From contig JALMLS010000056.1 of NCBI GenBank assembly GCA_038496445.1, positions 341,243 to 405,242 of the forward strand: a DNA stretch of 64,000 nucleotides, read 5' to 3'. Positions 1 to 16,497 of the stretch are shown here, piece by piece. A program made the translations under genes and the position numbers. Below the pieces are notes generated by a model, which was not told where the DNA came from, searched no databases, and was given only the letters and a program-made list of their open reading frames with translations. The DNA is from Trichosphaerium sp. ATCC 40318 (Eukaryota > Protista > Tubulinea). Within the stretch, counting starts at the first letter, position 1. Every line of letters starts with the position of its first letter.

Positions 1-2315
1 CAAACAATAAGGAAGCTGCAACTCTTAATAGGAATCTCATAACGTATGTCACAGACGAAAGTAATTTTAGTATCTATGTTGCACCGTCAAATAAGGTAAT
101 CATTAGGAAGAGCTTGTACAAATACTCACAAACATTATCTCTGTTTTATCCTAACACGTTTGACACACCATAGGGCCGTTTATTACTTTTACGTAATTTG
201 GAGCACAAAGCACAATTCCTTGCACGCGATTTAGTACCATTAGTCCGTTCAGCTCAAGTTTTCTTGCACAGCCGTGGTCAGAATGTTAACGAACGGTAAA
301 CAATCACGTCCTAATTGTTGTAAATTATTAATTTTGTGGTTGTAATTTAGGAAGATAATGAATGAACGTGTTCTTTGTGTGAGCCAAGATATCAAGTCTG
401 TAATGCTTCTATCACAAAAAATCGAACCAATTACAAAGAAAGAATCGTATTCTGGTCTTCCAGAGATACCTCTACAGCGAGCACCACGGGCCCCTGAAGC
501 ACCTGTACGTTGCATAGTATAGAGTCATACACTCTATGTGCTTACTATGAGTAGCAACCAGATGTTCCTGTAGTAGTTGTTGAAAAAACATTTGTTTGTC
601 ATTTGACACCTGAAGATTTAGAAAAACACACAAAAGCCGGCATACGCTTGTTTAATGGAAAGTTCAAAAAGGGGTACTATCTTGAATCTCATTTATTAGA
701 ATTAAAGCTAAATAATTGATGTAGTATTGCTTATTTGGTGGATAATGGTGTATTCGTAAAAGAGCCAAAACGTACGCACTATCTCTCAAAGTTTTTTTGT
801 TGTTGGAGTTTGTCAGCTCTCCACTTACAAGTTATTGATTTAGCAATCGCGGAGTTCTTACTAAAGAATGCCGAGACGATGTCAAAGGAGGAGGTTGGCG
901 AATACATAAGCGGTCCAGACGATTTTTCTATTTCGATTTTGAAGCATTTTACAAATCAGCTTGAATTTAATGGTATGTGGTGGATAGCTTTTTTTTTGGA
1001 TTAGATTTGTATGTCTTATGTGTCACAATTAGGACTTGCGTTTGATCAAGCTTTACGTAATTATTTGCAACTGTTTATGTTGCCAGGTGAAGCACAAAAA
1101 ATATCAAGGATTATGGAAGTACGTTGCCATTTTGCAGCGGCAAGGTTATGATATATTTTTTTTCTCATTTTATTCTTTCACCAGGTATTTTCAGCGCATT
1201 ATGTTGAACAGAATAGTGATGTATTCCCAGATGCTGATACTGGGTTTATTATTGCATTTTCGTTGATTATGTTGAATACAGATGCTCATAATCCTTCTAT
1301 TCCTGATAAGAATAAAATGACTCTAGAACAGTTTGTAAGGAATAATAGGTATGAAGTTTTGACTTGTACTTAGTTTCTTTTATCAGTTCTTTGTTCTTAT
1401 TCGTTTTAAAAAAGGGGTACCTGGGCAGGAAAAGACCCTCCAATAGAGATACTTGAAGAGCTCTATGACAATATTGTCACCAACGAAATTAAGTTTGAGA
1501 AAAAGAAAGATAAGGATGCCCCTGATAAGCAGGGTTGGGTTCGCCTGAAAGTCGGTTCTGATAAATCAGGTAAGTATAAGGCTATTCTATAAACCATGTT
1601 GTTTGATATACTTATTTCTTGGCGTAGAAAAACGTTACGCTGTCATTAAGGATGACGAACTTACATTTTACAAAAATCCAACAGAGGGTAAAGTACGTAC
1701 CGTATTCTACTTGTTTGTTGCGTTTTTATATTTCTGACTATTTGCCCAAAAGGGAGAAGAACCACTTCGTGGTTACATTAAGTTAGAGAGATTGGTTTGT
1801 AAGAAGGATCCAACAGATGATAAAAAGTTCTTGATTGCATACCACCTTGGAGGAGAGTTTGAGTCTCTCATGTTTGGTACGTAGCAAGCCATGTTCGTTT
1901 GGTATATTTATGTCTTTGTGTTTTTAGACAGGTCTGAGAAGCGGGTAAAACCTAGATGGGAGAAGACTATAACCATAATGCTTGAGTCTCCTATAAAGTG
2001 TAAGCAGTGGATGGCTGAGGTCACTAGAAATGTGTCATTCCCATCTTTGAGCTCTTCTCTTACAAAACGCAATCCATCACTTGCAGCTAAACAGAAACAA
2101 AGAAGGTTGAGCTCAACTGCAGCGACTTTGAAGGAGAGACCCGAAGGATATGATACACTCACAACAAAGTGCGCACTTGGTTTTTTTCTGGTTTTTTTTT
2201 AGGTGGTTACTAACATTTGCTAAGGAGACCTGACAGGCAAGACAACTTCCAGTTCCATGCGGGTATACAACATAACCAGTGGATGCAATATCTTGCAAGC
2301 ACTCAAAGGCAATAA
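1..2315 (+). CDS. Sec7 + PH domain ARF guanine nucleotide exchange factor (cytohesin-like), 5'-truncated by the window, multi-intron
   Basis: Spliced peptides GIRLFNGKFKKG-IAYLVDNG, EFLLKNAETMSKEEVGEYIS, FMLPGEAQKISRIME (Sec7 glutamate finger) and FSLIMLNTDAHNP...KMTLEQFVRNNRG; then PH-type KQGWVRLK...KRYAVIKDDELTFYK...KQWMAEV; stop TAA about 2313-2315. Confidence 0.92.
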
Positions 2316-2469
2316 TGTGCTTTATGCATCAAAATTGCTATGTAAAAACTCCCTTGTTACTTTAAAATACTTGTAAATGCTTAATTACAGCAAAACAATA
2401 CCAGTTATTAACCCTTTTTTTTTTGTCATCGACAAATCGAATTTTTGACCGCCTACGATTGTTTACAGC

Positions 2470-2778
2470 TCAAACGCCACTGGTGGAACTCGTAGTATAT
2501 TACTTGCGTACCGCACTGGTCAATTAAAAAGCATTGCTACATTGGCCAACGGAAAAAAAGAAGAAAAGTTGTTTCGTGAGACAGGTCAATTAGATACACA
2601 ATGTACCTTTTTCGAAGGTAGAAAACGCGCAAGGTGGTGGCATATGAATGTTTCTATGTGGCCCGTGTTCAAAGGAGAGGAAAATTGGCGGCATGATAAC
2701 GACCAATTGAGAATGCAGAGGTTTTATGCTAATGGAAGCCAAGAAGGAGAGCCAAAGTGTTGGCCCACAAAACTATAA
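2470..2778 (+). pseudogene. Degraded MORN-variant (YwqK-like) repeat gene
   Basis: Fragments ETGQLDTQCTFFEG, WWHMN and HDNDQLRMQRFYANGSQEGEPKCW resemble the repeats of the adjacent 3168-3854 gene; no ATG start, and repeats are truncated. Confidence 0.6.
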
Positions 2779-3167
2779 CCAATAAATAGTAAATAAATTC
2801 ATTAGTCTTGTGTAAACATCGTTCATGAGCCATGGCATGAGAACAAACAGTAGAGTGAAAAAGTGCAACTCTGTTTATGACACATAGTATTAAAGGACAA
2901 CAGACTACCATACACAATTCAGACTTTAAAGAAATCTTTTTCCTTAGCCGAGATTTGCTGTTTTTATGGGTTGAGGTCTGAGTGGGTCAAACAGCTTCAA
3001 GTCTGACTTTAAAGTCCTAAGCAGCAAAGAAGAAAGTCCATATTTTATACAAGTTTGCCTTTTGAACATAAATACCCATACAACGTGCAGACTTTAATGT
3101 TATATTTACCGGGCATACATTAACGAGCGTGTATTTGGTAAATATCACGTGATAATTTTATTAGTAA

Positions 3168-3854
3168 ATGGAGTGCCTAACAAGCAATGAAAAGAGAGCT
3201 ACCGAAAAATCACATGTTTGCCATGTATTACTCCTTCCCTACGAGATTCAGCTTGATATTATGGATGTAGACGCCTCAGTGTATTCAGCTTGGCCACTTC
3301 TTTCAAAACAGACGGCAACGACCACAAGGTTTGATATTGAGATGAAAAAACATGGAAAATGGCATAAAAATGGTCAAGTGCGCTGGCAATGCCATTATGT
3401 CAATGATAAACATGAAGGAGAGTACAAGAGTTGGTATGATACTGGACACATTTTGTTGCGGTGTACTTATGTCAATGATAAACGAGCAGGCAAGTTTATG
3501 TTGTGGTATAGCAATGAGCAATTAAATATTGAATGCAATTATATCAATGGTACACGCGAAGGAGAGTACACAGTTTGGTACTTAAATGGCCAAATGAAAG
3601 AGCGCAAGTACTATATCAATGGTGAACTTGATGGGAAGTGTAATGAGTGGCATGACAACGGCTCACTGAAAGTTCAGTGTAATTATACCAAAGGCGTTTT
3701 CACAGGAGTGTACAACAGTTGGTTTAGAAATGGACAGATGAACGCATACTACAATTATGTCAATGGTGAATTTGAAGGAGAATACAGAGTTTGGTCTATT
3801 GACGGCACATTGGTAGAGCACTACAACTATGTCCAAGGTAAACGATGTAAATAA
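3168..3854 (+). CDS. Intronless F-box-like N-terminus + MORN-variant (MORN_2/YwqK-type) repeat protein
   Basis: LLLPYEIQLDIM...VYSAWPLLSK followed by about 7 repeats of W(Y/H)xNGQ....CxYxNGxxEGEY; single exon. Confidence 0.85.
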   Translation: MECLTSNEKRATEKSHVCHVLLLPYEIQLDIMDVDASVYSAWPLLSKQTATTTRFDIEMKKHGKWHKNGQVRWQCHYVNDKHEGEYKSWYDTGHILLRCTYVNDKRAGKFMLWYSNEQLNIECNYINGTREGEYTVWYLNGQMKERKYYINGELDGKCNEWHDNGSLKVQCNYTKGVFTGVYNSWFRNGQMNAYYNYVNGEFEGEYRVWSIDGTLVEHYNYVQGKRCK

Positions 3855-4176
3855 AACTTCAAGATCATCTTTTTTTTTTTTGTTTTTGGAAGCAACTTCT
3901 TAATTGCACCTAACAAGGCACTCACAAATTCAATGATATAATTGAGATTTAGTTTGCAACCAAGTAAAAAAGTACTGTCGTACAAGTGCGACGTAAGAAG
4001 TTTCAGCGCATGAAAATACTTTAAGTTGAAAAGCTTCTTGCGACGCAATCACTTAATTGTATGAAAATTTACAACATCTTACTTTGTTGATTCTCTTTGA
4101 AAAATATTGACGTGCGTCCTAAAACATTAGAAATTCCAAAATCAGTTGTACCATCTTAATAGCGTAGCTAGCCACG

Positions 4177-6931
4177 ATGATGACTGAACAAGCCGATGAT
4201 AAGGTTTCTATTACTTTTAAGGACACTCAAAAGCAAGGGATCAAAGGAGAAAAAGGGTTTTACGTGGTACACTTTATTCTACACTAAAGTAGCGATAAAA
4301 CGAACCCATTCGTTTTTTGTCCAAAAATTACGCTTGTTTCATGTATTTGTGCTTTACTCACGAGGGGTAGGAGTACACGTTCCAAGTGACATCACAAACA
4401 GAGACGTGCGTACAAAAAATAGACATTGAAATTTCTAATGAAGCTAGTTGGGTTCTCACGCGTCGATACAGCGAGTTTGCGTCTCTTAAAGCCTGGGTAA
4501 AGGCGTTAAAAAAGAAATTGTAACTGTCAACCTGACACTTCTACAGATTGATGGAACATTCCCTGGAACCATAAAACAAGCGTTAGGGACAAAACTAACA
4601 TTCTGGATGAACGCAGAAAAAGTAGTTGGTTAGAGATTTTCAAAAAAACTAAAAACTCATTGTTCAGAAAATAACTCCATCTGTCGCCTAAAATTTATCT
4701 TTAGCGCAAAGAATTACGATTCTTTCGCAATTCATGAAGGAGGTAGCAGCATCTCCACTTGTTTTGAAGCAATACGAAGTGAGGAATTTCTTGGAGATGG
4801 ATGTTAATGTAAGTGCCTACAATTACCCTTTTGAACAAAATTTGACATTTATTTAGTTGCCAGATCCTCATGCTGATAAACCTAAACAAGGTGTACTAAG
4901 CATACGCGTTCTTGAAGTCCGCAACTTGACAAAAATGGCAGGAGGTAAATACGCTAAACGACTTTAGATTTTTGAAACAAAAAAAATTATCCATTCCAAA
5001 ACGGTGTCCATTAAAAACAACTTCCCTAGGTTTATACGTAAAATTGAATGTTAGTACTGCAGTTTCTCAATGGCGTAACAACAATTTAGCAGGTACCTGT
5101 AATCCTCGCCTCGATGACATTTAGTTGTTTACTAATTTTTTTAGATCCGTTCCCTCCCGCTTCTTCAGTGTTCATGAGAACTCTTGTAATTTCAAACAAA
5201 ACTAGGAATCCTAAGTGGAATGAAGAATTTACACTTGATATTGTAAACAGAAAAATGCCAGTCAGATTATGCGTTCAGGTTCGGTTATCTTTAACAAAAT
5301 TCTTTCTATTTTTTGAAAAACTAAAGACATGTGTTTAAGGAAATGCGTGCAGCGTCTATAGAGAGATTTCTTGGTGCTGCATCAATTAATCTAATGGAAC
5401 TTCCAGAAGAAACAAAGATTGACACTTGGCTGCCTTTGTCAGTACGTTACTACCTCTTGATTAAAACACAAAAAGCGGATCTATTTATACCTCCTTAGAA
5501 TCAAGCAAGAGGTGAAATTCATGTTGTTATGGAATTTGAACCAAAGACTGTTCATCTGCGGGCTGCTAAACAGATGTATACACGCACTGATCGCTTCAGA
5601 GTGTTCCTAGACACTGATAAATTTTATGCAGGAGAAGTGAGTTTCGAAAAGTTGTATGTGCACTAGTGTGCTGACTTTAAATTTATTGTAGAAAATCACG
5701 GGTGTAGTCAAGCTTAATTTGAATGACAACGATGCTGGAAAAATCAATGGAGTTAACTTGGAGTTTTGTGGTGAGGAAGTAACACACTGGCGCAGAGCTA
5801 CGTCTCAAGGACCAGGTAGAAAAACTGAACGATTTATATCTTTTTGCTGTGAAACTAAATTTCTTGTTCGTAGACGAACCTACAGTTGAGTCCCAATACT
5901 CTGGTTCACATGAATTTGGATTAAAGAATCAAGTAGTTGGTATTGACTCAACTCAACGATCTGTAAGTTCTAAATTGTTAACTAAACAAAGCTTACACCT
6001 TGTATTTAGAACAAGTACCTGCCTGTTGGTTGTCATAATTGGAAGTTCTCATTTGATGCACCACTTGACGCACCACCTTCATTCAGTACTGATTTTGGAG
6101 GCATTCAATACAAGATATTATCACGTGTCAGGAAACCAGGAGTAAGAAAAAAACTTTCCAATAAAAAGGCTAAAAGGAAGGATAGATAAAAAAAGCAAAG
6201 AAAGTACTAAAGTTTGATATTGCTTCACCTATGATTGACCAAAAAGCTGGAGAAGAGGCATCAGAGACATTTGTTGATAAAAACGATGGAGGTAAAATAA
6301 CTATAACGGTACGTCGATAACGGGTGTACAAAATAATACAAAAAAGAAAATACTGACATCTTGAAGTCACATGTAGAAAATAGTCTTGTATGTGTTGGAG
6401 AATCTCAAGTTGTGCACCTGGTGCGTTGATTGAAGAGTTTACATATAGCATATGTGACTAACTAATGTTAGACTATTGTTAATGAATCTAAAAAGCCTGT
6501 TGAGTCTATTAAAGTTATTATGACATCAAGAGCTACTTTTAAAGCGTCACATCCTGATACTGAAATTAAAGAACTTCAAGAAAAGAAAACAGAAGTTACA
6601 GTTGTTGAACGCACCTTAGAGGAAAAAATGCAACCGGGAGAGACGTAAGAGTTTTACATTCAATAGATATAATGGATGTTAATGTTGTGTATAGGTTGGA
6701 AAAGTCTGTAACGTTTGATGTACCCAGAACAACTTGTCCAAACGTTAAGAGAAAATTGGTTTCGACAAATAATTTTTTGAAGATCAAGTGTTCCGTCCCA
6801 GGCACGTGTCTTTACAGTTTAGCTTTTTGTTGATAAATACTGCCTTGTGGTTGTATTGACTGTTTTCTGTAGATTTTTTGTATGGGACTGTGATTCATAG
6901 TATGCCAGTGAAGGTTGGTACAAAGGTTTAG
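4177..6931 (+). CDS. PX - C2 - arrestin(N+C) domain protein, multi-intron
   Basis: PX: SWVLTRRYSEFASLK...EVRNFLE. C2: GVLSIRVLEVRNL...KTRNPKWNEEFTL...FLGAASINL...DTWLPL..GEIHV. Arrestin: FYAGE.ITGVVKLNL...FCGEEVTHW...FSFDAPLDAPPSFSTDFGGIQYKI...IVNESKKPVESIKV. Confidence 0.8.
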
Positions 6932-9179: not shown

Positions 9180-9233
9180 GGACATGCACGGGTTTGTTTA
9201 TTTTTTTTACGAAATCTTTCGAGAATATACGTA
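9180..9233 (+). repeat. Left terminal inverted repeat
   Basis: GGACATGCACGGGTTTGTTTATTTTTTTTACGAAATCTTTCGAGAATATACGTA, preceded by AAA (9177-9179). Confidence 0.93.
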
Positions 9234-9266
9234 ACTATTCGAAGGTTTCCGAAAAAACCCGAGTGT

Positions 9267-10264
9267 TTATTCATTAGCAAATACATGGCTCCATGGGCCC
9301 ACAGGCAAGTACCGTACTCTTTGCTTAAGTACTATGTTTGACAGGTGTGCAGTGACATACAAGCAAGCTTGCAACAACTCTATTCGGCCCCGAAAGGGTG
9401 TTTGGAACATAGTGTGAGCAGTAAAGTACCCGTTGATGTGTTCAACACGACCACGATAGTGTTGCATAATCACGTTGAAGTACAGCTCATCACAGGTAAG
9501 TAGCACTCCTCTTCTACAGCGAAATGGAACAATACAGTGTCCACAGCCTTTTCCTATGTAAGCTCCATCTATTTACTATTAGTACATCCCAAGTACACCT
9601 CCCTAACCTGCTAAAAATGCTTCCCAAGGCTCCATAGGATGCAAAGTGTCTGTATCCGCCCATATCTTGTTATCTGTTTTAGTGCCAAGGTGTGGTCCTG
9701 AAAACACAATGATCCGACCAAGAAAGTCAATACCAAGTTGTACCTTTACCACACAGTTTGCGTACTTACCAGCATACACCCGTGAGCGTATGATACACTT
9801 ACTTGGTTTGCGTATTATTATTGGGAACGTATCGATAATTCCCGTAACGTATTTTGGAAAATACTCGCCATGGTTAAACGGATTACTATACAAATGGTTA
9901 GCCCTTGAAGATGCTAAGCTATCGTACAGGCGAGACGACCAAGATATTTCTTTGAGCACAAGTGATAGATAGTGCAATAACGGTATCAAACGCTCTCGCA
10001 ATGAGTCTTGTGACTCTCCAAACAAAAACATTTGTCTTGTGGTTGGGTATACATGAATGTACAATAAAGCGCTGAACAAGTCACGCTGCACGTACATTGT
10101 ACCTTACAAAAGGGTTAGCGCGATGTTTTGTCGCAAACGGCGCACATACCCTTAACATAGCGCTTCCAAACGTACTTCAGTACCCAACGTGGATACCCTG
10201 TTGCAGCGTGCGTTTTAGCATCTGAAATATCATCAAAGGTGAAACTATTGCGCGGTTTGTTCAT
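9267..10264 (-). CDS. DDE transposase, HTH_Tnp_4 + DDE_Tnp_4 type (PIF/Harbinger/IS5-like), 2 introns (10149-10103, 9607-9569)
   Basis: N-terminal HTH-like AATGYPR...LFSALLYIHVYPTTRQMFLFG; catalytic motifs GIIDTFP, YAGKY..CVVKVQ, SGPHLG..D, FLA|DGAY (joined across the intron) and HYRGRVEHING; frame continuous after splicing. Confidence 0.9.
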
Positions 10265-10288
10265 TTTGAAGGTTAAGCGAGTGATAAA

Positions 10289-10882
10289 ATGGAACGCGAA
10301 GACGAATACTGCATACCGCCGTTTGTTCCTATAAGCAACACTGAAGTAGTTGTGCGTGCATTTTTGAATCAACAAATAGGTGGTGAAAGCATCGGGCAGC
10401 TACTGTGGAAAGGAATGGTAGAGAAATGGCGTACAATACAAAGACCGGAAGCCATCCTACCGCTTTTTGCAGAAGTGTATGACCACTCAAAAGCAAAACC
10501 GCGTACAAAGGTGCCTACTGTGGGATCTCTTGTAAACAGGAAGAAGGTAGACGGAACAGACTTTTTGTTGCTTGTGTTGAGCAAAGATAATGTACGAAAC
10601 TGATTGTAACGGCTAGTACTGACCGCTAAGGTATTTGAGCAATTGGATACAGAGCTTGCCAATCAGAAAAAAAGTGGTGTTGCTGACTCGGACATGCAAT
10701 CACTGGATTACTTTGATACTGAGTTGCGTGACGTGTTGCAAAGCATCATACAGCGTGTACAACGCTTGGAAGTGGTTCCTGAAAATGATATTGACGCCAC
10801 ACAAGAAGAAGAAATGCGTAAGCAATTTGTATTTCGCGATAATTTGGACACCAAACTGTTCAAGTGGAAAAAAAGATACTAA
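10289..10882 (+). CDS. Transposon accessory gene B, about 185 aa, unknown function, 1 intron
   Basis: ORF 10289-10591 joins in frame to VFEQLDTELANQ...FKWKKRY* across intron GTACGA...CTGAC...TAAG. Confidence 0.7.
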
Positions 10883-10906
10883 ATAAACTGAGTTGTTGAC
10901 ACATCT

Positions 10907-12501
10907 TTATTGGTATTCATCCGATGCAAATGAGCCGTCAGAAAGTGGTTCATCAGAGTAATCTTCATACGATGCACTAGCACTTGAGTCATGATCAGAA
11001 GAAGGACCAATAACACTATCAATGATGGGCGTACTAACCATAGAACGAAAGTGACCTTGCTCTTGCCTTTGTTTTGGTGGTATAACAGTACCAGGAATAC
11101 AAGAGCTAAGGTGACGAGCTGATCCACTCTCATTGCGGATGTGGCTTCTGGAGTCTCCAGGAGTGTTGTGAGGAAGAACTTTTCGTTTCCGCCTGTTTTT
11201 TCTTCGCTCATGTACTTCAGCTCTTATATCACGAGGCTCTTCACTCCTACTATTTTGTCTACTTGGTACATAGGATGAAAGCGTACGCGGTGGTGGTGTA
11301 TATGCTGTAGAACTGTCATACGGTGCTTGTGATGGGTTCGGGTTGGGAGAAATAGGCGATAAGGGTATATTGGCAAAGTGCATTGGAGAAGGCATTGGAG
11401 AAGGCGGTGGAGAAGGATCTAGCCCATGAAAACGCCTTCCTGATATTAGTGTACCCATATTAAAGTCCTTTGGTACTACTCTGGGATGTACTGGTTCCGT
11501 TGACTGTCTGGGGCGAGGTCGATTTGAACGAACTCTTGAAACTACATTTTCCACTTCATCAATGCGAGTATTATGTGCATTTGAAGCAAGGTCGATGTTT
11601 GGGTTTCGCGTAGAAGCACCTACAAAAATATCTTGGTCACCACGCATGTGCTCTTCTGTGTTGTCACGTTGCTCATCTATCAAACTACACAATGAGAGAA
11701 ATGGTACAACAGCTAGTTAAGTAAACGTACTGTAACTCTCTCACTCGTTCTCTAAGCTCCCTTCCAAGTATTATTTCATTGCAAGGGTTAAAAGCAGGTT
11801 CTATTCCTTGAGTATGAGTCTCTGCTATAAAGTGAATGAGCGTGTATGCTTTTCGTCTAGATGCCTCTTGTGACACTTGCAATGTGTCAAAAAATAATCA
11901 AGTAAATAAGCGCAAATAGCGTACATAATGGTTCAGGTCTTGGTTGTTCGCTAGCCAAGCGTTGTAATATTGCCATAAGACTAATACATTGTACGTAATT
12001 GAAGTGTCCCTCCTCTATCTTTTTTTTGGTTTCCAAAAAGTGCTGAATGTTAGTTTGCGGATCATTTGCGACATCAGGAACTTGTCTACGTAAATATTCT
12101 GCAGCAGCTCCACGCCCTTGCCTACGAGCATTTGCTATAAGCGTCTAATAACAATAAGTACGTGGACAATATTGTGTGTTTACCTGTCGCATAACGATTG
12201 TATACTCTTTGCTCAATGCGCGTGGTGGAAAGCGTTTGTACCCATTTTTATCAGCAAATATTGGGGCTATCTTTGTCCATTGCATAGTCTTGAAGTCTCC
12301 AATGCCTTTACGACAACGTTTTTTGTTCAGTGCCTTTTGCGCTTCAGATACCCACACGCACTCTCGTTCACTCATACTTTTGAATTTAGCTCCGCTTGGG
12401 TTTTTTTCAGTCGTTTGTTTGTAAAAGTGGCCTTTGCGAATAGCGTATGCTATGTCAATATGCATTTGTGTGTAGTAGTCATTCTGTTGCACTGCTGCCA
12501 T
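10907..12501 (-). CDS. Transposon accessory gene C, Myb/SANT(trihelix)-like N-terminus + long disordered Pro/Ser/acidic tail, 3 introns
   Basis: CVWVSEAQKAL...QWTKIAPIFADKNGYKRFPPRALSKEY resembles Myb/SANT-like helices of Harbinger ORF2 proteins; four exons splice in frame through GT-AG introns; NLS-like RRKNRRKRK. Confidence 0.7.
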
Positions 12502-12509
12502 CACTTGCA

Positions 12510-13145
12510 CAGTACTTGCAAAGTGCTTTTTCTGCTAAAAAATATTACCATACGCAAGCGGGATTTTAAAAGCACTTCAAAAGCACTTTGGAAGCACTTT
12601 AAAAGCGCTTACAAAGTACTTTGCAATCACGAAGAAAAACATTTTGGTTGTGAGAGAAAAAGTTTGTCGGAGCGGAAAAAACCCAGCGAAGCAGATTTTT
12701 AAAAGCACTTTAAAAGCACTTTAAAAGCGCTTACAAAGTACTTTGCAATCACAAAGAAAAAACATTTTGGTTGTGAGAGAAAAAGTTTGTCGGAGCGGAA
12801 AAAACCCAGCGAAGCAGATTTTTAAAAGCACCGTAAAAGTGCTTTTGAAGCGCTTTAGAAGTACTTATAAAGTACTTTGCAATCACAAAGAAAAACATTT
12901 TGGTTGTGGGAGAAAAAGTTTGTCGGAGCGAAAAAAAAGTGCTTTTATTGTACTTTATCACCACTTCCGAAGTGCTTTGTAACCACTTTGAAAGTAGTTT
13001 TAGCGAAGAAAAACAATAAAAGTGCTTTGCAAGTGCTTGTGAAGTACAAAGAAAGTGCTTTACCGCTGAAGTGCTTTTTATTGTTTGTCGCCAACTCTGT
13101 AGTTTTAGCACGTACACCATACCTTGCAAGCGCTTTTAAGAACTT
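12510..13145. repeat. Hierarchical tandem array: runs of 11-bp AAAGYRCTTT-type units alternating with three copies of an about 78-bp block
   Basis: Block GCAATCAC(A/G)AAGAAAAACATTTTGGTTGTGAGAGAAAAAGTTTGTCGGAGCG... starts at 12623, 12745 and 12879 (third copy truncated); preceded by 5, 4 and 5 units of 11 bp; further phased units run to about 13140. Confidence 0.95.
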
Positions 13146-13276
13146 CACGGAAATAGCTATCTACAGCACACATAAAGCATATATTACATACTGTGATCGA
13201 GAAGCTCTTTGCAAATGAAATGTCTTAGCGAAAGTGTTGTTGACGGATTTTTGTTACAACAATACAATTTGTTTAT

Positions 13277-14378
13277 TCAACCAAAAAATCTGGCATACAG
13301 GTAGTTAAGTGGCGAGGTAAGCTGTTGTTCGTCTTCTACTGCAGTAGTATTTGGTGTATCTGGTATTTCTTCCATACTCTCACTACGTGGGCTACCTTGT
13401 GGAATGAATAGAGAATGTTCTGACATTTCATCAGTATTTAGCGTGCTTGCATCTCTTGCTGTTTCAACGCTGTTGTTTCTACGTGAAAGAACTTCCTTCA
13501 GCTCCTCCACAAAAGATTCTATAGTTTCCTCCACAACAGGCAAGGTGTCATCCATCACCTCCTCTACAACTGATGCGCTATCAGTGGAATCCGTCAACTC
13601 CTCAACAACTTGTGTGTTATCAACAGAATCCTTTACCTCTCTGAGTGGCTCAAAATCAACAGAATCGCCCGACTCATTTGTAGCTGGTGAGTGTGCTTCA
13701 GCATCATCAGAATGCATCGAGTCCACTCGTTCAAGGAGGTTATCCAAAGAGTTTATTAGTTTTTCTGACGCTAAAAACAAAATAAATAATACTGTCAGTA
13801 AACGTTGTGATTTTCTTACGTGTGCTTGGAATAGGCTGTCTTCGGATACTTGAAGCACCGCTGATAAAGCCATCTCGAGTGTTGATTAGCTCTCTAACAC
13901 CATCTCCCTCGTGAGTAGCATAGTCAGATGCATGGCTTTGAACATGCCAGTTGATGTCTTGTAAGGTGATGTTGGTAAGCGGTTCTCCGTTGATAGTGTA
14001 CCCTTCCTCTAGTATAGTGTAGAGCTTTTCTTGTTCCCACATAGACGCTCTAGCTTTGAACCAAGCACTTAACCTTTCCCGATCAATAGTGGCGCCAAAA
14101 ATGTGCTGAACTACAATCGCAATGGCTGACCAATAATACAAGCAATCGTCCAGGTCGTAGTTTTGTAACGCAAAAAACGTAAACTCCCACAGCGTTTGTG
14201 TCATTTCACTAATAGCGGGCAGGTTTCGCAACAACAAGTGCTTGCGATTCGAGTGTACATCTATCCATGCTATTTGTTCTGTCACATAACGAAGTAGTAG
14301 TGGCGGATAAGGCTCGTGTATGTTCAAACCAATGAATGTCAGTCCGATACGACACTCGAAGGTTAGACTAGGCTCCAT
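13277..14378 (-). CDS. Transposon accessory gene D, about 350 aa, helical N-terminal domain + acidic tail, 1 intron
   Basis: ORFs 13740-14378 and 13277-13873 join in frame (PIPST-P-SEKLINS) across intron GTAAGA...CTGAC...TTTTAG. Confidence 0.72.
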
Positions 14379-14431
14379 TTGTGTGTCAAAGCAAGTATTT
14401 TAGGGAAAAAAAGCTTTATTATTTATTAGCA

Positions 14432-16403
14432 ATGGAACGCACTCCACCACGCATTCCAGATGAGGTACTATTGCTGCGTTGGTGCAACTAACAATACTAG
14501 GAACCCAAGTTTTTAAACGTTCTTAGGCGTACACCAACACGCGTCAAGGGTAGCTCGCAAGCAAAACAGAGGACAAACAAGCTCATAGACCTATTCACAG
14601 TAACTCAAAAAAATTTATAATATCATCTTTACCCTACTAGGCGTCACACTCCTTGATGCCTTGTTCGGAAGTGCCCAGAGGAGCTTTTGTCATGTTTTTG
14701 GACAATGAGGACCTTTTTTATGGCTATGCATTCTTTTTTCGAAATTACTTGTACACTGTTTGTTTCCTTGACAACGGTGTGATCCAAAAAGCAGTGCCCT
14801 TACAAGTAAGTTGATAACCAACAACAATACGCTCACTAGTTTATAGATAGCGGTGTGTGTGTGCTTAGAATACCCTGTTATGACAATGCCAATGAATGCA
14901 TGCTTTGAGCATTTTTCTACTATTGTTGAGCCCGAGTACACAGATTACCCAATCCCAAAGATACCTAAAGCCACGCTAGCCATGGTTTATAAGGTATTGC
15001 TACAAGTGAACAGCCAAGGGTTAAGTTATACACGTATGTTGCACTTACTTGCGTTCAGAAGCCCAGAAGATGTTAACAACTTGCTCAGTACGTACTTATA
15101 GCTCACTTACACTCACATCTTCTAGGTTCCGAAAACATACCGTTGTGTAACCCACCAACAGAATCGCATTCAAAGGCAACAAGCTTTGTAAGGGAAAAAC
15201 ACAGCAATCGTACACAACGTGAACAACCACGAAAAAAGAAAAACCAAACATCAACAGCAGAAAAACGGCGTTTACGCAGAAATGAGCCTAAGGAGCCATC
15301 AAGTGACGAAAGCACAAACGACAATGCTACTTATTACCCTAACAGTGTCGATACAAGCAGTACGTTACTATTCTCCTTCATTCCGCTAAGCAGCTAAGGT
15401 GATGACTGCAGTGTATCATTTGATGAAGAGACTGACAGCGAGGGGTCAACCGATCCAATAGAGCCACGTGCGTTCATTCATCTATTATTTTTATAACGTT
15501 GCTTTAGGCAAGTGGAACAATGAGAGTATTATTAGTTATGCAAGTGCAATTCGCTTGTTGAGGCGTGTGTGTGTTGCTGGTACTGATAGTGATGAAGCAG
15601 CACGTGTGCGAAGGATGATACAACAAGAACGTAATGCCAGAAAGAAACTCACAGCCGAAGAGTTAGTAGAGTGTTATAAGTCTGATGAAACTGATGTCAA
15701 AAAGTACGTGCTACTTGTCTCCTGTAGTACCATTAATCATTCAAAGGGTGGTCAGGGAGTGCTTTAAGCAAAGGCGAGCTCATACAAAGAAGCGCACACA
15801 ACGTTCAAGGGCAAAAAAAACTCGTAGAAGGTAAAATTTTAATATCTAGTGAAGGGCTAACACTTATGAAGAAGCAGAGTAACGACACGCCAAAAGCAAC
15901 AGCCTGTGACTTCACAATTGCCTGAGATACATGACTTTAGCAATCCAAAGTTTGGTAGGCAAGTTTCTTATGGGGCAATGGTTAGCCAACAAGCCTTACA
16001 TCCAGAAATACGCATGGATGTAAGGTGCAGGGGCTCTAGTCACAACCTTAGTCCAGCATCCTCGTCTAGTAGCAATAATTTGATGGTACCTGCTAACACA
16101 CCGTCACCGTACTTCGACCCTTATGCCCCTGCAAACGATGAGTCCTCGTATCCAAATAATAGTGCCATGGCGCCTATAAATCCTGGTACTTATGCTCCTG
16201 TAGCTCATAGTACACCTGCACTGACTGAACCATCTAATAATAACCGTGAACCTATTACAAACGCTGGTCCTACACACAGTACACCAGAACAACTCAAGAT
16301 TACAAACAGGAAACTAAATTTTAGTACTACTGGCAAAAAGGTATGGACAGCAGATAACAAAAAGGGGAATGTAGCAGCTTTGCGTGATCGCTTCAATAAA
16401 TAA
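14432..16403 (+). CDS. Transposon accessory gene E, multi-intron, unknown function (basic and acidic tracts, possible helical DNA-binding domain)
   Basis: MERTPPRIPDE start; successive exons splice in frame via GT-AG introns; segment GKWNNESIISYASAIRLL...VVRECFKQRRAHTKKR; ends AALRDRFNK* next to the right subterminal region. Confidence 0.65.
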
Positions 16404-16443
16404 TAATCATTACTCGTGAAATCTCGGATTTATTCGTTTTTCG

Positions 16444-16497
16444 TACGAAAACTCTCGAAAAATTTCGTAAAAAAAAGAAACCAACCCGTGCATGTCC
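16444..16497 (-). repeat. Right terminal inverted repeat
   Basis: Reverse complement reads GGACATGCACGGGTTGGTTTCTTTTTTTTACGAAATTTTTCGAGAGTTTTCGTA; followed on + by AAA (16498-16500). Confidence 0.93.

Follow-up and report, generated by a model that had tools for sequence, protein, structure and literature searches.

A unique array of palindromic 11-bp units in the upstream region of an orphan gene of a Trichosphaerium PIF/Harbinger-type transposon

In the middle of a PIF/Harbinger-type transposon of Trichosphaerium sp., a non-coding array of about 640 bp (12510..13145, without assigned strand) has been found, which consists of about 29 units including degenerate copies with the consensus nAAAGYRCTTT, each built around the 8-letter palindrome AAGYRCTT as its core. 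Positions refer to the window, which is the whole 64-kb stretch of DNA that was analysed. The anatomy, uniqueness and position of the array and the site-like conservation of its units are observed; the binding of a protein, the identity of this protein and a regulatory effect are inferred. The reading that we favour, tentatively and with a confidence somewhat short of even, is that the array would be a bank of sites, multiplied in tandem, to which a dimeric protein binds and by which the adjacent orphan gene, gene C, is controlled.

Architecture of the array and variation of its units

Exact matches to AAGYRCTT number 32 in the 64-kb window compared with 8.4 +/- 2.9 in shuffled sequences, and none of 100 shuffles reached 32. 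As many as 21 of these 32 cores are located within 615 bp (12521-13135); besides the array, the element contains the word at positions 14063 and 14236 only, and nine exact cores are distributed over the other 56.7 kb of the window outside the element. The more than 20 units of the AAGYRCTT type that had been reported in a preliminary description are recovered as 21 exact cores, and as about 29 units with the degenerate copies. By TRF, the array is the strongest tandem repeat of the 64-kb window (score 533; the runner-up scores 94) and is resolved into sub-arrays of period 11 and a 123-bp unit present 2.8 times at 89% identity. Successive core matches with at most one mismatch are spaced by exactly 11 bp in 14 of 25 intervals, the 11-bp spacing being exact inside runs of two to six units.

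Run 1 (12568..12622), with five 11-bp units and the centres CA, CA, CA, CG and TA, is followed by the first copy of a conserved spacer (12623..12700; 78 bp), by run 2 with four units (12701..12744), by the second spacer copy (12745..12823; 79 bp), by run 3 with five units, the first one degenerate (12824..12878), and by a truncated third spacer copy (12879..12934). Drawn more narrowly, the three runs extend over 12570-12621, 12703-12743 and 12826-12877. The subsequent degenerate tail (12935..13146) holds runs of six and four units (12937-13061) and three stragglers reaching 13145, mostly in the GTGC orientation; like the array as a whole, these segments have no assigned strand. The runs of 5, 4 and 5 units split by a conserved block of about 78 bp are thus present as described beforehand, with the spacer copies of 78-79 bp about 97% identical to each other. 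Equally, the described higher-order periods of 122 and 134 bp, differing by about one 11-mer, are seen in the ungapped register; in the motif register they read 133 and 123 bp, and the difference amounts to one 11-mer +/- 1 base. Units of both orientations, GCAC- and GTGC-, are present in the array.

The two edges of the array (12546-12579 and 13115-13147) have a direct repeat of about 34 nt in common (ACCATAC..GCAAGCG..TTTTAA..ACTTCA), with a local alignment score of 32, whereas the highest score among 2000 null samples was 23. That the edges share this repeat, which contains one AAGCG(C) unit, suggests that a single site expanded in situ into the complete array, and the edge repeat is likely the footprint of the ancestral single-copy sequence behind the array. 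A 10-mer, GAAAAAACCC, is found in the left subterminal region of the element (9247-9263) and in both full spacer copies (12673-12688 and 12796-12811), a weak sharing noticed post hoc with roughly P=0.03. The midpoint of the array (12827.5) is 11 bp off the midpoint of the element (12838.5), which is treated as coincidence.

When 24 contiguous phased units are scored against the majority, 6.9% of the cells are variant at the six outer positions AAG/CTT and 37.5% at the three linker positions, and the two central positions are variant in 41.7%, yet display Y and then R in 48 of 48 bases. All four YR centres are seen (CA 8, TA 7, TG 6, CG 3), in keeping with half-sites that accept either C or T independently of each other. 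The variation by position departs from uniformity (chi-square P=1e-4) among units that are related by duplication and not independent of each other; these conservation statistics overcount by including recent duplicates and are biased, as the boundaries of units and runs were picked by the core itself. As judged from the aligned units, the position-wise variation differs from the prediction of uniform neutral decay, and the pattern fits two abutting inverted AAGY half-sites for a putative dimeric protein.

The notion that the 11-bp spacing places the sites on one face of the helix stands inside runs of 4-6 units and falls between runs. For all 29 units, the phase coherence R(11 bp) is 0.30, a value that is reached 57% of the time when the runs are offset at random (P=0.57), and at 10.5 bp R is 0.26; a global helical phase has consequently been rejected, the runs being out of register with each other. 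Only within stretches of 44-66 bp can the sites reasonably be said to share a helix face, and even there the 11-bp pitch on a 10.5-bp helix would by arithmetic correspond to about 17 degrees of overwinding per unit.

An occurrence of the array genome-wide and independent of the element, which the preliminary description had itself named as an argument against a role in the element, is not observed; the array matches itself alone in 70.3 Mb and is thus neither a dispersed satellite nor a MITE. Equally, no second copy of the array or the spacer is found in the 70-Mb genome. The three-unit phased pattern occurs at seven places of the genome, all seven within the array, and the two-unit phased pattern at 14 places, 11 of them within the array, with two places for the reversed control. 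Single AAAGYRCTTT sites are about three times commoner than the reversed control (1742 vs 585 in 70.3 Mb), and the 12 sites in the 636-bp array amount to a density several hundred times the genome average. Part, at least, of the genome-wide AAAGYRCTTT excess is coding, with two fetched loci consisting of 63-bp leucine-rich-repeat units (V-K-A-L-A-G). These two loci, C1:319600-320200 and C2:625200-625800, are 90% identical coding arrays of 63-bp LRR-type repeats (...VTDEGVKALAGVH...) and explain part of the genome-wide AAAGCACTT excess; apart from the array, the word is locally concentrated nowhere else in the genome, and the two loci are otherwise unlike the array. For a host transcription-factor site, the genome-wide 10-mer excess provides no evidence, as at least part of it derives from the coding LRR repeats.

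Beyond this genome, the three-unit pattern has been identified in three viral contigs and 104 metagenome stretches, none of which encodes a relative of any ORF of the element. Among those inspected, the tailed-phage contig IMGVR_UViG_3300021255_005871 (3460-3800) repeats AAAGTGCTTT in 11-bp tandem among structural genes, the units forming two sets of opposite orientation on either side of about 100 bp of AT-rich sequence, with an origin- or operator-like look. Since there is no protein similarity between the phage locus and the element, the word common to phage and element is best taken as convergence or chance. A giant-virus contig possesses five units in an intergenic position between convergent genes, and the marine metagenome contig Ga0115012_10039443 (1100-1950) harbours a plain 850-bp CCAAGCACTTT satellite with an 11/12-bp period and about 40 cores, the long open frames on both strands of this satellite being an artefact. 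A literature search on the 8-mers retrieved primers and miRNA seeds only.

The host transposon, its genes and related families

The transposon spans 7,318 bp (9180-16497; about 7.3 kb) on contig C35 of the 70.3-Mb, 642-contig assembly and is delimited by terminal inverted repeats of 54 nt that are 89% complementary (left, 9180..9233, plus strand; right, 16444..16497, minus strand). AAA, found just before the left and just after the right repeat, constitutes a 3-bp target-site duplication that departs from TWA, which is the usual target-site duplication of PIF/Harbinger elements. The transposase gene at the left end (DDE_Tnp_4; 9267..10399, minus strand) has at least one short intron near 9573-9605; PF13359 scores 26.4 bits, above the cut-off, and 16.8 bits on two of its exons, and in a six-frame scan of the genome the transposase reaches 45.5 bits for DDE_Tnp_4. 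The DDE_Tnp_4 transposase, the terminal inverted repeats and the 3-bp duplication are features that the element shares with PIF/Harbinger transposons; to the second gene of such transposons, which encodes a Myb/SANT-like DNA-binding partner, gene C gives weak leads only. The transposase displays 45-60% identity to those of two further families of this genome, and a transposase exon has one 40% match on a 1-kb metagenome contig and no relatives among viral contigs. At the DNA level the element is single-copy, with the array and both element halves matching themselves only in the 70.3-Mb genome, and it may no longer be under selection for the functions of transposition.

DDE_Tnp_4 is the sole domain recognised by Pfam, by which several long cargo ORFs remain without any family; none of the cargo ORFs shows a DNA-binding domain. 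Two short in-frame tandem repeats have been observed among these ORFs: the acidic part of gene D contains a 39-bp unit 2.1 times (13550-13631), and a Pro/Ser-rich ORF (10910-11716) contains a 12-bp unit 3.1 times (11380-11416).

Gene C is an orphan on the minus strand, with exon 1 (12184..12501) comprising 106 codons from the ATG at 12501. A canonical intron of 39 nt (12145..12183, minus strand, GTAAAC...TTATTAG), as read from the sequence, would be followed by exon 2 (11887..12144, minus strand) with 85 codons and the stop, in which the frame continues exactly. Splicing would restore a gene C frame of 191 codons, with the stop of the unspliced ORF (12145-12501) inside the intron. This intron, canonical and preserving the frame, gives gene C the appearance of a real gene. 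Gene D (13277..14378, minus strand), equally an orphan, consists of two overlapping open frames, and an AATAAA at approximately 13273-13278 overlaps its stop, so that the gene D transcript probably ends before the array.

The array occupies 636 of the 775 bp between the gene D stop (13277) and the gene C ATG (12501, minus strand), and its end lies 9 bp from this ATG, in agreement with the earlier placement of the array directly upstream of gene C. An AT-rich, TATA-like stretch is located about 40-50 bp upstream of the gene C ATG, with two motif units in between. Judged by position, the array forms the region upstream of gene C, and we infer a promoter, operator or enhancer role that it may have there.

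Searches have not assigned a family to either neighbour. Gene C, whose exons were taken separately for searches and folding, has no match by word search or among PDB sequences and, like gene D, no Pfam match even at E=10; for gene D no relatives were found in searches. A phmmer search of gene C against 1.84 billion representatives yielded no credible relative, the sole match, a translated tandem repeat of 2155 aa, being spurious with a score summed from 17 weak stretches. The single-sequence AlphaFold model of gene C has a pLDDT of 41.5 and is unusable. A language-model atlas gave weak leads only (0.79-0.80) to Myb_DNA-bind_3/4 clusters, and by eye a W-x23-W-x23-Y spacing is discernible, gene C being Myb/SANT-like by such weak signs alone.

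Only about ten DDE_Tnp_4 loci have been detected in the six-frame scan of the genome. Family B, 4.7 kb in length, has three copies, on contigs C133 (stretch 287-5025), C288 (stretch 1991-6731) and C419, with inverted ends of 47-48 nt that each carry two TATCGATA palindromes. Its transposase shows 57% identity to that of the element, and the matches of the three copies scored identically; the family looks young and is possibly active. A degenerate related copy is present on contig C15. Family B and the C15 copy have the transposase alone in common with the element, their other ORFs being unrelated. In the comparison of array structure across element families, which the preliminary description had proposed as a check for co-variation with cargo proteins, family B and the C15 copy turned out to possess no tandem array, with one to three scattered cores at background level. 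The presence of the array does not characterise the family. Neither end of the element has an AAGYRCTT within 3.3 kb; the word repeated at the ends is another one, TTTCG/CGAAA. As the motif is absent from the element ends, the kind of position at which the one Harbinger partner protein characterised so far binds (PMC9710019), the array is not the canonical transposase-recruiting site.

Possible origin and function of the array

If the array is a cluster of binding sites, it would comprise about 29 putative sites for a dimeric sequence-specific protein, each with two abutting inverted half-sites AAGY/RCTT. An ancestor may have possessed one site upstream of gene C, of which the 11-bp unit would have slipped and multiplied first; in a later step, a block of about 123-133 bp, encompassing units and the 78-bp spacer, would have been duplicated in tandem. 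The present role could be that of an upstream control region of gene C, either as a promoter-proximal operator or as an enhancer, with the 11-bp spacing arranging four to six dimers per run roughly on one helix face and so allowing cooperative, high-avidity loading. The binder would most simply be encoded by the element, as the gene C product in an autoregulatory loop or as another orphan cargo protein, and may possibly be a host factor. A bolder proposal, which we consider unlikely, is a VANC-like self-recognition that would have arisen independently, outside plants and outside Mutator elements, in an amoebozoan PIF/Harbinger element; dimers of a fast-evolving orphan protein, the product of gene C or a neighbour, would occupy the about 29 sites as a central landing pad and so control the chromatin or expression of the element. 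If an element protein indeed binds the array, sequence-specific self-recognition via tandemly amplified sites would not be peculiar to plant Mutator elements, but something that DNA transposons have arrived at repeatedly, in this case in a lineage of amoebae that has received little study, with a protein and an 8-bp palindrome as a compact pair to work on.

On the other hand, the array might be a neutral minisatellite, in which slippage and unequal exchange amplified the 11-bp unit and later the block of about 125 bp within an old immobile element, the palindromic look being inherited from the founder unit. This explanation is the main rival and is possible, though less likely than not. It accommodates the hierarchical structure with a very recent block duplication (spacers about 97% identical), the unit number that varies by block (5, 4, 5), the degenerate tail, the runs that are mutually out of phase and the occurrence of the same core in unrelated plain 11-bp satellites of metagenomes such as CCAAGCACTTT, as well as the single-copy state of the element with its inverted ends at 89% and the related families without an array. 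Neutral decay, however, should strike all 11 positions alike, whereas the linkers are about five times more variant than AAG/CTT and the changes at the centre are transitions throughout, always preserving YR; moreover, tandem repeats are otherwise very rare in the window (TRF 94 vs 533), and the array is situated exactly at the promoter position. As a neutral minisatellite, the array would only mark the origin of a tandem repeat inside an otherwise repeat-poor genome. That the array is a foreign insertion, namely a nested MITE, a satellite fragment or a captured host sequence, is hardly credible and already largely refuted: the edge repeat of about 34 nt could pass for a long target duplication, but it contains a motif unit and is a better fit to in-situ duplication, the array edges are devoid of inverted ends, neither array nor spacer has a further copy in the 70-Mb genome or the window, and outside the array the word is locally concentrated in coding 63-bp LRR repeats alone, which are otherwise dissimilar.

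An action at the RNA level, with a self-complementary transcript that would serve as structured non-coding RNA or give rise to small RNAs by which the element is silenced or tuned, appears very unlikely. The strong fold of the minus strand (-177 kcal/mol vs -142 +/- 5 for shuffles, z = -7.1) and the presence of both GCAC- and GUGC-oriented units, which point in this direction, have to be viewed against the fact that a strong fold is automatic for arrays of near-palindromes; furthermore, no Rfam family reaches the threshold, the best being a plant miRNA model with 36.7 vs 139.7 bits, and read-through is not expected with the AATAAA at the gene D stop upstream of the array. The repetitive ncRNA template that had been offered as an alternative in the preliminary description is thereby left with a fold strength that is trivial for palindromic repeats and with Rfam scores below threshold. 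A low probability of similar order is given to a site for the transposition machinery, an internal enhancer or synapsis platform on which a Harbinger partner would load and recruit the transposase. Known sites of this kind are subterminal, whereas no AAGYRCTT is found within 3.3 kb of the ends, which bear the other word TTTCG/CGAAA, and family B has its own TATCGATA in the inverted ends and no internal array. The PIF/Harbinger transposase, inverted ends and 3-bp duplication are in place, and a Harbinger partner protein binds a 9-bp motif (PMC9710019); that the array midpoint is 11 bp from the element midpoint would equally agree with a central platform, but this position was noticed after the fact and counts as a coincidence for which no mechanism is known.

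Comparison with known systems

The VANC proteins, which TEs encode, bind short motifs; in non-coding parts of the protein's own element these accumulate as tandem repeats that evolve fast (PMC5735166). The VANC target repeats of Arabidopsis VANDAL elements and the array have in common dense short motifs, tandem duplication, a location in non-coding DNA upstream of or within genes of the element, a quickly evolving copy number and rarity elsewhere, and to this extent, as a dense non-coding array rare elsewhere in the genome, the analogy drawn in the preliminary description is sustained; it breaks down at the proteins, a VANC-family protein and a MULE transposase being absent. VANC motifs are of 9 bp, non-palindromic and in one orientation, whereas the array is palindromic with an 11-bp pitch. 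Furthermore, VANDAL elements are MULEs with a recognisable VANC gene, many copies and demonstrated co-variation, in contrast to the single-copy PIF/Harbinger element, in which Pfam finds neither a VANC-like gene nor a MULE transposase.

The 12-bp motifs of TnpA in En/Spm overlap the promoter of the element, which leads to autoregulation. In Harbinger3_DR, a Myb-like protein binds a 9-bp subterminal motif and recruits the transposase (PMC9710019). The likeness of both systems to the array, the binder of which would putatively be element-encoded, lies in the repeated short sites; the Harbinger3_DR and TnpA sites, however, are found at both ends within a few hundred bp, whereas the array is central and its motif absent from the ends.

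In plasmid R1, parC presents 11-bp sites in sets of about five upstream of the operon of its binder ParR. ParR dimers bind parC cooperatively and also repress the promoter, in a system with an actin-like motor and a partition function. This system is prokaryotic, has direct and not palindromic repeats, and no homologous genes occur in the element, so that the analogy is geometric only. The array belongs to none of the VANC, En/Spm TnpA and parC families, as VANC or MULE genes and partition genes are lacking and the array is not subterminal. Iterons define replication origins beside a Rep gene, and they, as well as the AAAGTGCTTT phage array, consist of tandem 11-bp units like the array described here; the element, however, has neither Rep nor origin. 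The iteron analogy suggested at the outset accordingly has to be given up, the neighbouring ORFs being without a Rep-like domain and the locus lying on a eukaryotic chromosome without origin context. Finally, the array resembles ordinary minisatellites with higher-order structure in that its 11-bp unit is part of a larger one of about 125 bp, as well as in its variable unit number and its degenerate edge, and is unlike a neutral minisatellite in the position-specific conservation of the palindromic core and in its promoter position.
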